Shown here piece after piece: positions 17,274 to 30,673 of a stretch of DNA of 32,443 bases. The stretch is from the sequence record BK067788.1; one strand, written 5' to 3'. The notes under the pieces were generated by a model. The model had not been told where the DNA came from. It was given only the letters and a program-made list of their open reading frames with translations, and ran no database searches. Every line of letters begins with the position of its first letter. Positions within the stretch are counted from its first letter, which is position 1. The translations under genes and the position numbers were made by a program.

Positions 17274-17957
17274 GTGAAAGTCCTCAATCTCTATTCTGGC
17301 ATAGGTGGCAATCGGAAGTTATGGAAGGATGTAGAAGTTACAGCAGTAGAAATTAATCCAGAAGTGGCCTCTATCTATCAAGATCTTTATCCACAAGACA
17401 AAGTAATCGTTGGAGATGCACACCAATATCTATTAGAACACTTCAAGGAGTTTGACTACATTTGGTCTAGTCCTTCATGCCAAAGCCATTCTAAGTTTAG
17501 AAAGAATGTAGCATGTCAAGTTAGGAATGATAATCCAGGTGGGCGATATGCAAAGCCAGTTTATCCAGACTTGCATTTATACGAAGAAGTAATATTCTTA
17601 CAGCATTACTTCAAAGGAAAGTATTGTGTCGAGAATGTTGTGGCCTATTATGAACCGTTAATCAAGCCTCAATTAATACAGAGGCATTGGTTCTGGGCTA
17701 ACTACCATATTGAAGATAAACACTTTGAACGTGATAATATTGCTAGAGGTTCACAGAAAGAACATGAGAATAGAATAGGAGTTGACTTGTCAAAGTACAA
17801 GGTTAGTTCAAGGAAGAAAGGTCAGAGTAGAAGTGAAGTATTAGAGAAGGACCAGATACTTCGTAATTGTGTAGATCCTTTATTGGGCTTGCATGTCTTT
17901 GAATCCTCGTTTACAAAACAAGTTATCTTATCAACGCTTGGGTTTGAAAGTCCATGA
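17274..17957 (+). CDS. Short C5-cytosine DNA methyltransferase-like protein
   Basis: LNLYSGIGG (motif I), AVEI (II), GDA (III), SSPSCQ (IV), VENV (VI), QRH (VIII). Confidence 0.8.
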   Translation: MKVLNLYSGIGGNRKLWKDVEVTAVEINPEVASIYQDLYPQDKVIVGDAHQYLLEHFKEFDYIWSSPSCQSHSKFRKNVACQVRNDNPGGRYAKPVYPDLHLYEEVIFLQHYFKGKYCVENVVAYYEPLIKPQLIQRHWFWANYHIEDKHFERDNIARGSQKEHENRIGVDLSKYKVSSRKKGQSRSEVLEKDQILRNCVDPLLGLHVFESSFTKQVILSTLGFESP

Positions 17958-18211
17958 GTGAATACCCACAGACTAGAAAACAGAAAATATCTTATTGGTG
18001 GTTTTGCAATAACGCATTAATCTTAATGATCATAACTTCGGTTCTTATGGTCTATGATGTGTTTCCTGTCTTAACATCAATATTTACATTGGATTTTATT
18101 TTCAATCCTAATCATATCGTTCATAACGTGTGGCATTGGTACATAACAATTCCTTTAGGTATTGCATGGATGTTTTTCTTTATGAGATGGTTAGGTCCAT
18201 CACCTTTCTAA
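17954..18211 (+). CDS. Two-TM membrane protein, last gene of the rightward operon
   Basis: Two hydrophobic helices. Confidence 0.65.
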   Translation: MSEYPQTRKQKISYWWFCNNALILMIITSVLMVYDVFPVLTSIFTLDFIFNPNHIVHNVWHWYITIPLGIAWMFFFMRWLGPSPF

Positions 18212-18237: not shown

Positions 18238-18672
18238 TTATGAAGGATAATCTATTTCAGGATGCATTATCTTAAGGTCTGCCGTATGCTCAAAGCCTAG
18301 AAAATGTCCTAGTTCATGTTCTAACACTTGTTCTGTAAATCTATATTGAGAATCATGTACGATACAATATGTGTATATGTTAATAACATGACTAGTTTTG
18401 TTAAAGCTTCCCATGATATCACCATTGCATATATTATTTAATGTTATAATAACTTCGGGATTGATTTTTGAATATTTTAAATGATAGCCGTAATTTTCCC
18501 AATAATTTGCAGAGGTTTTTATCAATGTCATGTTTGTTAGTTTATTTGGTGTTACATAATAGGTATGTATGCCAGTTGGATAATCCTTTAGACTGGAAGC
18601 GTTTACAGAAAATGAATGGTATGGAAGTAATATAATAGAAAATAAAAATAAAAATAATAGAATCTTATTCAT
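18238..18672 (-). CDS. Secreted metzincin (matrixin/M10-like) zinc metalloprotease
   Basis: Signal peptide; HELGHFLGFEH = HExxHxxGxxH; Met-turn KIMHP. Confidence 0.85.
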   Translation of the reverse strand: MNKILLFLFLFSIILLPYHSFSVNASSLKDYPTGIHTYYVTPNKLTNMTLIKTSANYWENYGYHLKYSKINPEVIITLNNICNGDIMGSFNKTSHVINIYTYCIVHDSQYRFTEQVLEHELGHFLGFEHTADLKIMHPEIDYPS

Positions 18673-18673
18673 T

Positions 18674-20407
18674 TTAGCTTATTTGTTTTATAATTCCATC
18701 TATATTATAGGTAATTGCAGTATATGTTCCGGCTGGATCTGTTCCTATTGATATAGTTGTTCCGGCTTTAGCTCTTATTGATAAAGACTGTCCATCCCCA
18801 ATAGGTCCGTTAGTATTTGTGAATGTATTTTGTATAGCTGCGGTAGGAGTACTAAAAGGCATTTTAACAGTTCTTGCTACTGATGTATCATCTGTATAGT
18901 TCATTAAAATACTAAATGAATATGTAGTCGATGTTGTTGCATGAATATTAAATGATACTTCAAAATCTCCGTCACTGGGACCAACTGTATAACTTGTTAC
19001 TGTTCCACTAGCTCCTGTTAGTCCTGTTAATCTTCCTGATCCGTATATTGCGGGTATTCCCCATCCCTTAGTATTGATTGAATTATATTGCGTTATTTTT
19101 GTCTTGAATAAAGTATCTACATAATTGGTAATACTAGTTTGTGCCATCTGCATTACTTGTATTAGATTTAAAGACCCACCTTTAGCAGTTCCAGTATTAC
19201 CATCAGATATATCAAATTCAATACCCTGAGTTAATGATGAGCCTCCTTGCATTTGAATATGTGAACCACCCCCTCCTTGGCGTGATTTCCAACCTGATGA
19301 ATAATACAGATTTTGGTCAACATCAGTGTAAAAGCTTGGGGGTGAACCGATTGCAAAAAAATCTAAAATATTAAATGGTAAACCGTCAGTGTTTGTACTT
19401 GTTCCTAAGTTTGCTTGATTAATATTATTTATATTGTTATTATTTACATTAATATTTGAACCTGACATGGTTATTCCACCACTGAATGTTTTTCCACCTG
19501 TTGCAGTTTGTGTTCCGTTTAACTCCATAACTCCGGCTGCATCTATTCCAACTTTGATGTTATTGGTGCTGTTTGTTATTGTAGTATAGCTTGGCTGTCT
19601 GATTACAGATATTGACGGTCCTGTCTGACTGTTAACGGAAGTGATTGCGGATAAGATACCAGTATTTGAGATGGTTCTAGAATTACCTGAACCTGATATG
19701 CCTATGCCTGAACCAGCTACCAGAGTATCTAAAACCTGTTTACCATTCTGAAAGAATCTGGTTCCATTCACATCTGCTAATCCGGTAAAATTCTTATTTC
19801 CTCCGGCTGCATTACCACCTAAAGTTAGTGCGTTTAGTGTAAGACCTTTAGTTATAGTCTGAGTTGATCCACCAGTAACTACAACATTATAAGCCGTATT
19901 GACTGTTATGGTATTTCCTCCGGTATTTGTACATGTAGTATTACCAGAGACACAGGCAATAGTCAGGGCACCTGTCAAGGCATTAAGTGAAGATACTCCG
20001 CTGGATGTTCCTGTCGCTGATACAGTTACGTTAATCTGGTTTCCTGAACCTGAATTTTTTAGATTCACTGTGGCACCTGTTCCGTTTATGAAATTGATCT
20101 TGTAACCGCCAGAGTTTATGTTTACGTTATTGGCCTGAGTTGTGTTATAGGTTCCAGAAGCTTGTGATATGCTGGAAGATATTTGTAGAGTGTGGGTAGC
20201 ATTGTTTGATTTTACTTGGATGCCTGATCCTCCTGATACAGTTAGTGGCATTGAAAAGTTAACTGCGGATATTGTACCGTTGTCAGAATGGATCTTATCA
20301 AAGGCGTTTGTAGGAGGCACGTTCATGTATGGTCCTTCATCTGCAAATGTTGTATTAGGAATTATCAGGATTGATATAAACAGTATAGATAAGATAATCT
20401 TCTTCAA
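18674..20407 (-). CDS. Fibre/adhesin-like virion glycoprotein, 577 aa
   Basis: Signal peptide (TTFA); G/S/T/N-rich beta repeats; VSSLNALTGALTI and ITSVNSQTGPSI tail-fibre-like motifs; many sequons. Confidence 0.7.
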   Translation of the reverse strand: MKKIILSILFISILIIPNTTFADEGPYMNVPPTNAFDKIHSDNGTISAVNFSMPLTVSGGSGIQVKSNNATHTLQISSSISQASGTYNTTQANNVNINSGGYKINFINGTGATVNLKNSGSGNQINVTVSATGTSSGVSSLNALTGALTIACVSGNTTCTNTGGNTITVNTAYNVVVTGGSTQTITKGLTLNALTLGGNAAGGNKNFTGLADVNGTRFFQNGKQVLDTLVAGSGIGISGSGNSRTISNTGILSAITSVNSQTGPSISVIRQPSYTTITNSTNNIKVGIDAAGVMELNGTQTATGGKTFSGGITMSGSNINVNNNNINNINQANLGTSTNTDGLPFNILDFFAIGSPPSFYTDVDQNLYYSSGWKSRQGGGGSHIQMQGGSSLTQGIEFDISDGNTGTAKGGSLNLIQVMQMAQTSITNYVDTLFKTKITQYNSINTKGWGIPAIYGSGRLTGLTGASGTVTSYTVGPSDGDFEVSFNIHATTSTTYSFSILMNYTDDTSVARTVKMPFSTPTAAIQNTFTNTNGPIGDGQSLSIRAKAGTTISIGTDPAGTYTAITYNIDGIIKQIS

Positions 20408-26797: not shown

Positions 26798-26850
26798 TTC
26801 TTGGCATTTCCTCCTAAACTTGGCACTATCATAAACAAAAACTCAATGGT

Positions 26851-26866
26851 TTTTAAAGTTTACTTG
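26851..26866 (-). promoter_or_regulatory. Putative promoter CAAGTAAACTTTAAAA (copy 2)
   Basis: Identical to 20432..20447; upstream of ATG 26832 (12-aa uORF coupled to 26797). Confidence 0.45.
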
Positions 26867-28636: not shown

Positions 28637-28801
28637 TTAGGATGTAGATGTAGGTTCATCCTTTGGTTTGTTTTTCTTATCCTGTTGTTCCTTGTATTTT
28701 CTTGCCAATCTCTTCTTATGTGACATTATAGCAGCCATCAAAAGGCCACCCATAGCCACACAGATTTCTATTGTTGTGGTCCAGTTTGGTACAAATGGCA
28801 T
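28637..28801 (-). CDS. 54-aa single-TM micro-protein with a basic tail
   Basis: Manual translation MPFVPNWTTTIEICVAMGGLLMAAIMSHKKRLARK... Confidence 0.6.
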   Translation of the reverse strand: MPFVPNWTTTIEICVAMGGLLMAAIMSHKKRLARKYKEQQDKKNKPKDEPTSTS

Positions 28802-28944
28802 TATTTGTTCACTCTCCTACTCAGATTGAGCAAGTAGACAAGAAATTCTTCACCTGTCATTTTAAGCCCTTTGGCTTTCTTTAGACGGTATCTTTCATCG
28901 TTGAACTGATCAAGCGTACCATCTGACACGGTAATCGTTGTCAT
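28801..28944 (-). CDS. 47-aa RHH/CopG-like DNA-binding protein (MTTITVSDGTLDQFNDERYRLKKAKGLKMTGEEFLVYLLNLSRRVNK)
   Basis: Manual translation; MTTITVS strand, helix, then T-x-EEF-L-x-x-LL helix typical of archaeal RHH proteins. Confidence 0.65.
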   Translation of the reverse strand: MTTITVSDGTLDQFNDERYRLKKAKGLKMTGEEFLVYLLNLSRRVNK

Positions 28945-28949
28945 ATTAA

Positions 28950-30083
28950 TTAATTAGTTATATCATTATTTAATTGTTCTGTCGGTAATAATTGATCAAT
29001 AGGCGTGGTTTTATCATCGTCAGACAATACTCCATCAAGCATTTTTTTAAGCTTGGTTCTTGTTATTTTGAACCCATAATGAGTAGCTATGTCTTCTAGT
29101 GATATTTCCTTCTTATCTAATGCCTTGTATAGATACTTTTTGCATGTAACAATAGGCTTTGAATAAACATTAATGCCATTTTCCATCATTATTAGCTTGC
29201 ATGTTGCTCTAACTACATATTCAGTGAATTTCTTATTTGTTTCGTTAATGAACTGATCTACTGGAATTTCACTAAAATATAATTTTTTATTGGCTAGGCT
29301 GCAAATAGAGCATATTTTATCAATCCATTCCCTAACAGGAAATATAACATATCTTAACGAACTGTTATTAAAAAACAGGCATACCACGAATGGGTTCTTG
29401 TAATTGTATATGAAAAAGCCTTTAGCTGCAAAGGCAAATGTACATTTCTGTTTTGATGTCATTTCTACATATTTTTTCTCAAAATCTTCTATTTTGCTTG
29501 TGTATCTAGTTCCAACTATATTTATCATGTTTTCCTTCTCACTTGAACCAATAGAGGTAAAAAATCTAAAATTTGCTTGTCTTAGATACTTGTCAAGACC
29601 TAACGTATAATGATAATCATAAATTAGGATGATCTTGTAATCTCCATTTTTCAGGTGTCGTATTTTGGTTACTGCATTTTTTACTTCTTCTATGGCCTTT
29701 TTGTTTGCCAGGAAAGATAGGTCATGAAAATACAAAATATAGTTTGCTGGATCTAGAGCTTCCAGAGTTCCTTTCATATCATAAAACTCTTCCTCTCCAA
29801 ATTCTCTATAAGCAAAAGGTACGCATCCTAGAGACTCACTCATTTTATGGATCAGATGTGCGCATGTTTTAGCCAATGAAGTTTTACCTGTTGAAGGTTC
29901 GCCCACTATACCTACCTTTACAACATCCAGGGATTTTGTAGTATTGAGTATTTCAGTTATAGCAGCTCGTAGGCTATGGTTCCTGATCATATCACAGCCT
30001 TTCCATTTTATTACAGTTGGTGCATTCTTCTTGGATAGATGATCGGGGTTTTGTAATTGAACCTCAACATGTCTGATAACCAT
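28950..30083 (-). CDS. P-loop ATPase (viral AAA-like; packaging or replication role unresolved)
   Basis: Walker A GEPSTGKT, Walker B ILYFHD; C-terminal CSIC and HTH-like SLEDIATHYG. Confidence 0.8.
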   Translation of the reverse strand: MVIRHVEVQLQNPDHLSKKNAPTVIKWKGCDMIRNHSLRAAITEILNTTKSLDVVKVGIVGEPSTGKTSLAKTCAHLIHKMSESLGCVPFAYREFGEEEFYDMKGTLEALDPANYILYFHDLSFLANKKAIEEVKNAVTKIRHLKNGDYKIILIYDYHYTLGLDKYLRQANFRFFTSIGSSEKENMINIVGTRYTSKIEDFEKKYVEMTSKQKCTFAFAAKGFFIYNYKNPFVVCLFFNNSSLRYVIFPVREWIDKICSICSLANKKLYFSEIPVDQFINETNKKFTEYVVRATCKLIMMENGINVYSKPIVTCKKYLYKALDKKEISLEDIATHYGFKITRTKLKKMLDGVLSDDDKTTPIDQLLPTEQLNNDITN

Positions 30084-30673
30084 TATGTATCTAATTCCTC
30101 TCCTGTCTTTCCTTCAAGTTGTTCTAATTCTGATCCATCCTTGGGAGTATAATCACGCCTGAACTTTGCAGCCTTGGCCTCCAATTCATCTAGTAACTTC
30201 CAGCACCAATTCTGGAATTTAATATCAAACTGTCTGCGGTCTGTAAGACTGTCCTTTCGTTCTGGTGGCTTTGGTACTATCCCTAAGAAGCTAGGTTCTT
30301 CAAGTTGATACTTTATCATCTCAGTTTCTACCAGACGGTTTACATGGTTACACTTGCCACAATGCCAAACCTTGTCATACTTTTCTTTGGTGAATACTCC
30401 AATGATTAATGGATTTAGAAGCTTCTCAATCTGCATATCTTTAACCTCTATCTCTTCATCACAGTACGGACATTTGGCGTTTAGCTTCTCTTGTGTCTTG
30501 GCCTCATATTCTATTGTGGATATTTTAACTCTATAATCTTCAGGCAAACATCCGTTGAAAGCATACAAGGAACCTACTGCGGCATCATATCTTCCATTTT
30601 CCATATTGAAGATAGCCTGATTTCTATACTTGATGAAAGCGGTATTAATATCAGGTAAAGACGCTTGTGGCAT
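30083..30673 (-). CDS. Zn-ribbon-containing protein co-transcribed with the ATPase
   Basis: KCPYC...WHCGKC; TAATG coupling. Confidence 0.7.
   Translation of the reverse strand: MPQASLPDINTAFIKYRNQAIFNMENGRYDAAVGSLYAFNGCLPEDYRVKISTIEYEAKTQEKLNAKCPYCDEEIEVKDMQIEKLLNPLIIGVFTKEKYDKVWHCGKCNHVNRLVETEMIKYQLEEPSFLGIVPKPPERKDSLTDRRQFDIKFQNWCWKLLDELEAKAAKFRRDYTPKDGSELEQLEGKTGEELDT

Follow-up and report, generated by a model that had tools for sequence, protein, structure and literature searches.

Gene content of the locus

The window analysed here is the whole stretch of 32,443 nucleotides from record BK067788.1, the published genome of Nitrosopumilaceae spindle-shaped virus isolate NTM1, which is of rhizosphere origin. 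The IMG/VR copy of the genome (32,542 bp, with direct terminal repeats) is rated complete, and several soil metagenomes contain contigs that are near-identical to it. Within the window we focused on ORF55, a small gene that directly follows the fibre gene ORF56 (Table 1). GenBank labels it as "ORF55" only, with no functional annotation, and the protease is nowhere mentioned in the paper describing the eleven genomes that include NTM1 (PMC10866085). A sequence-only reading of the window had claimed a signal peptide, a complete HExxHxxGxxH motif and a Met-turn at 18238-18672, in a gene starting 2 nt after the fibre stop. We found all three elements on the minus strand, the only strand on which the frame is open (the plus-strand translation is full of stops), and the ATG indeed begins at the second base past the TAA.

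Table 1. Positions of ORF55, ORF56 and their features in the window
Feature	Position	Strand	Remarks
ORF55, predicted exported mini-metzincin, 144 aa	18238..18672	minus	mature part approximately residues 26-144
Signal peptide codons, residues 1-25	18598..18672	minus	from sequence; probable cleavage after V-N-A
Zinc-binding consensus HExxHxxGxxH (HELGHFLGFEH), residues 119-129	18286..18318	minus	aligned by HMMER to the MMP motif
Met136 of the Met-turn I-M-H-P	18265..18267	minus	7 residues past the third His; aligned by HMMER with the MMP Met-turn
Stretch between Cys82 and Cys103	18364..18429	minus	pair conserved in 9/12 family members
ORF56, fibre/adhesin gene, probably 577 aa with signal peptide	18674..20407	minus	TTG start, TAA stop
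Fibre C-terminal tip module, residues 425-577	18677..19135	minus	found together with the protease gene
TAAAATG junction: fibre stop, one base, protease ATG	18670..18676	minus	identical in contig L010
16-nt promoter-like element with TATA-like TTTAAAA	20432..20447	minus	25 nt upstream of the fibre TTG

Both GenBank and the metagenome gene callers put the start of ORF56 at the ATG at 20326 (550 aa). Initiation at the TTG at 20407 adds 27 residues, which form a typical signal peptide. We favour this longer form because of the added signal peptide and the TATA-like element 25 nt upstream, and the 577-residue protein is probably the real ORF56. An identical copy of the 16-nt element lies upstream of ORF68, another structural unit (approximately 26850-26866, minus strand), and its sequence suggests a promoter role. 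With this spacing between the element and the TTG, the fibre mRNA would have almost no leader, and the protease would be its second and last cistron. The transcription-unit analysis around ORF55 found no bacterial-type terminator. Downstream, 26 nt separate the ORF55 stop from the end of the convergent neighbour ORF54 (17954-18211, plus strand), which encodes a small membrane protein of 85 aa with two to three hydrophobic segments. The earlier placement of the protease at the end of the adhesin transcription unit is therefore plausible, given the TATA-like element before the fibre and the position of ORF55 as the last minus-strand gene before a convergent one, and the two genes are presumably co-transcribed.

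ORF55 is very probably a truncated metzincin

ORF55 contains both the extended zinc motif and the Met-turn that are criteria for metzincins. The Pfam model Peptidase_M10 (PF00413) matched the protein over the motif region only, with an E-value of 2.5e-4 and a score of 21.4 bits that does not reach the gathering cut-off of 24; among nine relatives scanned, the cut-off was passed only by L054 (30.7 bits). A profile of the ORF55 family matched MT1-MMP (E 6e-5), and PHROGs contained no family for ORF55 or its relatives. A single-sequence AlphaFold prediction was unusable (pLDDT 43) and the alignment-based model was used instead (pLDDT 82, pTM 0.73). In this model a strand is followed by helix A, four strands, the active-site helix and two short turns. 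The top Foldseek matches were all metzincins, namely myroilysin, karilysin, MMPs, snapalysin and archaemetzincin, while the closest ESM Atlas clusters were bacterial matrixins of 138-172 aa, with a Nitrososphaerota M10 cluster as one structural neighbour. Taken together, these results make it very probable that ORF55 is an enzyme of the metzincin clan; it is matrixin-like and closest to the matrixins, but lies under the Pfam threshold.

The upper-domain fold of the metzincins is present in ORF55, with its five-stranded sheet, helix A and active-site helix B. Structural alignments extend through the Met-turn, the geometry of which comes from the predicted model only, and end near residue 243 of MMP-12 or residue 111 of snapalysin, so that helix C of the lower domain is missing. 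The chain stops 8 residues after Met136 and 15 after the third His. To our knowledge, the C-terminal helix is present in all characterised metzincins, and because ORF55 lacks it, its activity is not assured. There is likewise no cysteine-switch propeptide, no unpaired N-terminal Cys, and no structural zinc/calcium loop, the cluster of His and Asp residues being absent between strands 3 and 4. ORF55 is thus a truncated metzincin variant of approximately 118 mature residues, and is new in a virus group without annotated metzincins.

The N-terminus resembles a Sec-type signal peptide, in that a short charged stretch leads into a hydrophobic core of 13 residues and V-N-A precedes S-S. In the model it forms a helix (residues 2-14) followed by a low-confidence linker (residues 21-27), and the domain begins approximately 8 residues past the predicted cleavage site. 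Judging from these features, ORF55 is likely to be exported, and we regard it as a predicted Sec-exported zinc endopeptidase with presumed catalytic activity. Cys82 and Cys103 would probably form a disulfide across the beta sheet.

The ORF55 family is conserved and ORF55 is under purifying selection

An exhaustive homology search with ORF55 against 1.84 billion representatives returned 12 matches. Two of these, P0008 (2761 aa, with ankyrin-type repeats) and P0014 (1715 aa, a repeat protein), were rejected as relatives since their scores were sums of weak repeat matches. The true small relatives number ten, in addition to one variant 84% identical to ORF55, and are 107-170 aa long. In the family alignment of 12 sequences, W58, G88, H119, E120, G122, H123, G126, H129 and M136 are invariant, and all sequences terminate 3-17 residues past the Met. 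Every full-length relative has a hydrophobic segment at its N-terminus that ends at a small-x-small site, and the alignment shows recurrent N-x-T sequons at positions 44/47 and 91. The signal peptides, the Cys pair and the sequons would suit a protein folding on the outer side of the membrane.

The 84%-identical variant lies on an independent contig (L010), and its comparison with ORF55 gave dN 0.071, dS 0.48 and dN/dS 0.15, demonstrating that ORF55 is under purifying selection. The ten small relatives, the invariant residues and this ratio show that ORF55 is not a chance ORF. The claim of a secreted metzincin of 144 aa is well supported by the motif, the invariant catalytic residues, the signal peptides, the Cys pair, the sequons and the purifying selection. 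The database protein for the L010 gene (P0003, 132 aa, ending in W; L010:169-605) is a miscall with an internal Met start and a TGA read as Trp; the true gene encodes 144 aa and has the same start as in NTM1.

Other searches had different reach. A word-based protein search with ORF55 found the 84%-identical relative only, and a scan of IMG/VR with the single ORF55 protein gave no match. Among the matches listed for a genome-collection scan there were only distant bacterial multi-domain MMP-like proteins, and among those listed for a metagenome scan there were mostly members of the marine family described below, Acidobacteria-type proteins of 400 aa and one copy of P0007. Four DNA sequencing runs yielded scattered short contigs only, none of them on the protease gene.

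A related lipoprotein family occurs in marine phages

Scanning IMG/VR with the ORF55 family alignment identified 45 loci, mostly marine. The encoded proteins (approximately 170-190 aa) have lipobox N-termini, HE.GHALGW.H and H-I-M-H-P, and in all but one of them 19-36 residues follow the third His (52 in L055). An hhalign comparison showed the ORF55 and marine families to be homologous over 109 columns (99.4%, E 7e-22). In 39/44 loci the marine gene follows an endolysin with Amidase_2 and PG_binding_1 domains, usually by 0-30 nt (L013:5035-6528; L014-L057); the five remaining loci had no informative neighbours. The phage that carries the marine metzincin encodes DnaE, RNR and DnaB. Since the amidases of these loci are 69-100% identical and thus represent a single phage lineage, the adjacency to the endolysin counts as one observation. 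The marine family had no match in PHROGs or among GenBank phages. Its members may be outer-envelope lysis factors.

Linkage to fibre genes is recurrent and not obligatory

We examined the neighbourhood of the protease gene across the ORF55 family. In 5/10 family contexts, all of them on AT-rich contigs like NTM1, a fibre gene with a homologous tip adjoins the protease gene at the 3' end of the fibre, and it does so in two orientations. The two genes are co-directional in NTM1, L010 and L009. The fibre end and the TAAAATG junction of L010 are the same as in NTM1, and in L009, where the protease is 35% identical, the homologue of the fibre tip ends 6 nt upstream. In L012 (protease 29% identical) and in L011 (35% identity across the aligned part), the genes are convergent: they lie on opposite strands, and the fibre-tip homologue meets the protease gene tail to tail.

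The other half of the family has no fibre gene next to it and sits among small early-type ORFs. Upstream of P0004 the available 391 nt contain no fibre, and SSB-like and ATPase-like genes follow it; P0005 and P0007 have small ORFs, methyltransferases or an HTH gene as neighbours; and P0006 and P0009 have no adjoining fibre. Furthermore, no homologue of ORF55 was found in the ten other published relatives of NTM1. In the closest of these, NTT2, the fibre has an unrelated tip and is followed by an unrelated secreted Cys-rich protein of 104 aa. The NTT2 fibre (BK067783.1; L101/L102) is split across the record ends (28773-30340 and 2-1844, ORF67 and ORF1; approximately 1000 aa), and the 104-aa protein, which has a signal peptide, occupies the place of the protease after it.

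The fibre tip module was also found in two tailed-phage-like contigs that have no protease gene, so that the archaeal virus and tailed viruses have a receptor-binding tip in common. The long fibre proteins that end in this module are encoded on a GC-rich contig (L103:1072-3474) and on a contig with a terminase gene (L104:2581-3420). The core of the module reads N-x-I/M-x-T-x-G-x-G-V-P-x-I-Y.

The sequence-only reading had called for a check of fibre-protease linkage in other archaeal viruses and had named merely sporadic linkage as evidence against its proposal. The five contexts with an adjoining fibre uphold the linkage; the fibre-free half of the contexts and the absence of the gene from ten published relatives show that the pattern is in part sporadic. 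The linkage is thus recurrent, beyond the shared ancestry of one operon, and is not obligatory.

Possible roles of ORF55

We tentatively favour, as a possibility well short of certainty, that ORF55 acts on a host envelope protein, either the S-layer or a receptor, in egress or entry. Both the host of NTM1 and its envelope are predicted. The protease would be made late, most likely on the same transcript as the fibre, and would either be exported into the gap that separates the S-layer from the cell membrane or leave with the particle. At this presumed location it could cut its presumed substrate, the S-layer lattice or a surface receptor, and such cutting would open or remodel the protein wall that the virus crosses when leaving or entering the cell. 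The recurrent adjacency to fibres, the position of the marine homologues after an endolysin and the precedent of Listeria Mtz make an envelope target plausible; the missing C-terminal helix, the ten published relatives without the gene and the fibre-free half of the contexts weaken it. A more specific version is doubtful: ORF55 would be the first S-layer protease known from a virus, exported together with the fibre of an archaeal spindle-shaped virus or riding on it, and would cut the host's protein wall to let the particle in or out. If it were true, the marine phage lipoproteins would have a comparable task at the outer envelope of bacteria, next to the endolysin.

The association with one fibre-tip module also bears on other roles. 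The protease might clip, on the producing cell, the receptor recognised by the neighbouring fibre tip, so that progeny would be spared loss by re-binding and rival viruses would be kept out. The same logic applies to phage T5, whose Llp is encoded next to its receptor-binding protein. Such receptor destruction or superinfection exclusion would account for a protease that accompanies one tip module in two orientations, as expected for a shared target, and agrees with the predicted export of the protein and with the budding, chronic lifestyle that spindle-shaped viruses infecting this host group are assumed to have (PMC10791045). We nevertheless think it unlikely, as the same module occurs in tailed-phage contigs without the protease and half of the protease family lies away from fibres. 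These two observations also bear on a maturation protease that would act outside the membrane, where it would trim ORF59, another virion glycoprotein or the fibre, in the last case perhaps a C-terminal assembly region. The tight stop-start junction, conserved in L010, the fibres adjoining the protease in five contexts and the signal peptides on both proteins are what such a role would predict. The homologous tips on phage contigs and the fibres of sister viruses, however, manage without the protease, the convergent layouts of L011 and L012 break co-translation, and some family members are far from any fibre, which makes maturation improbable. A complex prediction for the fibre tip (residues 425-577) and the mature protease gave no verdict (score 0.00) and speaks neither for nor against binding.

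The sporadic distribution, the truncated scaffold and the Pfam score under the gathering cut-off could alternatively mean that ORF55 is an accessory gene, encoding either a zinc-binding scaffold that became inactive when the C-terminal helix was lost or a protease with a target other than the envelope, for instance one directed against competitor proteins or host defence or serving nutrient release. The catalytic residues, including Glu120 and Met136, are nevertheless invariant, and with a dN/dS of 0.15 they point to a preserved active site; we therefore give this explanation little credence.

With regard to an envelope target, a 2024 review knows of no archaeal virus with an identified S-layer-degrading enzyme and calls S-layer crossing a mystery for most of these viruses (PMC10791045). 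ORF55 is a small, easily expressed candidate for such an enzyme. In addition, it defines a metzincin scaffold of approximately 118 residues without the C-terminal helix, which bears on the minimal requirements of the clan, and it leads to the lipoprotein mini-metzincins of abundant marine phages, a family not described before.

Comparison with known systems

Compared with the matrixins (MEROPS M10A, PF00413), which include karilysin and the small matrixins of Bacillota, ORF55 scores below the family cut-off (21.4 bits against 24) and lacks the cysteine-switch propeptide, the ligands of the structural zinc/calcium loop and the C-terminal helix, with only 15 residues after the third His; its Cys pair is specific to its own family. 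Snapalysin (M7), the small neutral protease of Streptomyces (132 aa), has Asp as its third zinc ligand. Its alignment with ORF55 ends at chain residue 109-111 of 132, and the approximately 20 further C-terminal residues have no counterpart in ORF55. Reduction to a minimal scaffold is known for Asp- and Glu-zincins, in the mini-zincins or minigluzincins of approximately 110 residues such as Acel_2062 (PMC3890501). ORF55 is similarly a zincin pared down to a minimal scaffold, but the third ligand of the mini-zincins is Asp or Glu and they lack a Met-turn, whereas ORF55 has the full metzincin motif and the Met.

Among viral proteins, the marine family (alignment A2, from uncultured IMG/VR contigs) shares with ORF55 the W-x-x-[LY]-G motif, Cys, HExxHxxGxxH, H-I-M-H-P and a short C-terminal tail. 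The two differ in anchoring and context, as the marine proteins have a lipobox and are encoded after an Amidase_2 endolysin in a DnaE/RNR phage, whereas ORF55 has a predicted cleaved signal peptide and lies beside a fibre gene. Listeria Mtz (LMRG_00713) is a Sec-exported metzincin of phage origin that is often encoded downstream of the holin-lysin genes in prophages; it cuts its partner, the lipoprotein Tim, changes the wall, and raises phage-mediated lysis and virion release (PMC8235301). Like Mtz, ORF55 is a small, predicted Sec-exported, accessory viral metzincin near envelope-related late genes. In the bacterial system, the TIMP-like lipoprotein substrate is encoded directly downstream of Mtz; downstream of ORF55 we looked for a partner gene, TIMP-like or otherwise, without success, and the gene that comes next is the convergent ORF54. 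Finally, the wall of the Mtz host is peptidoglycan, whereas that of the ORF55 host is predicted to be a protein S-layer.
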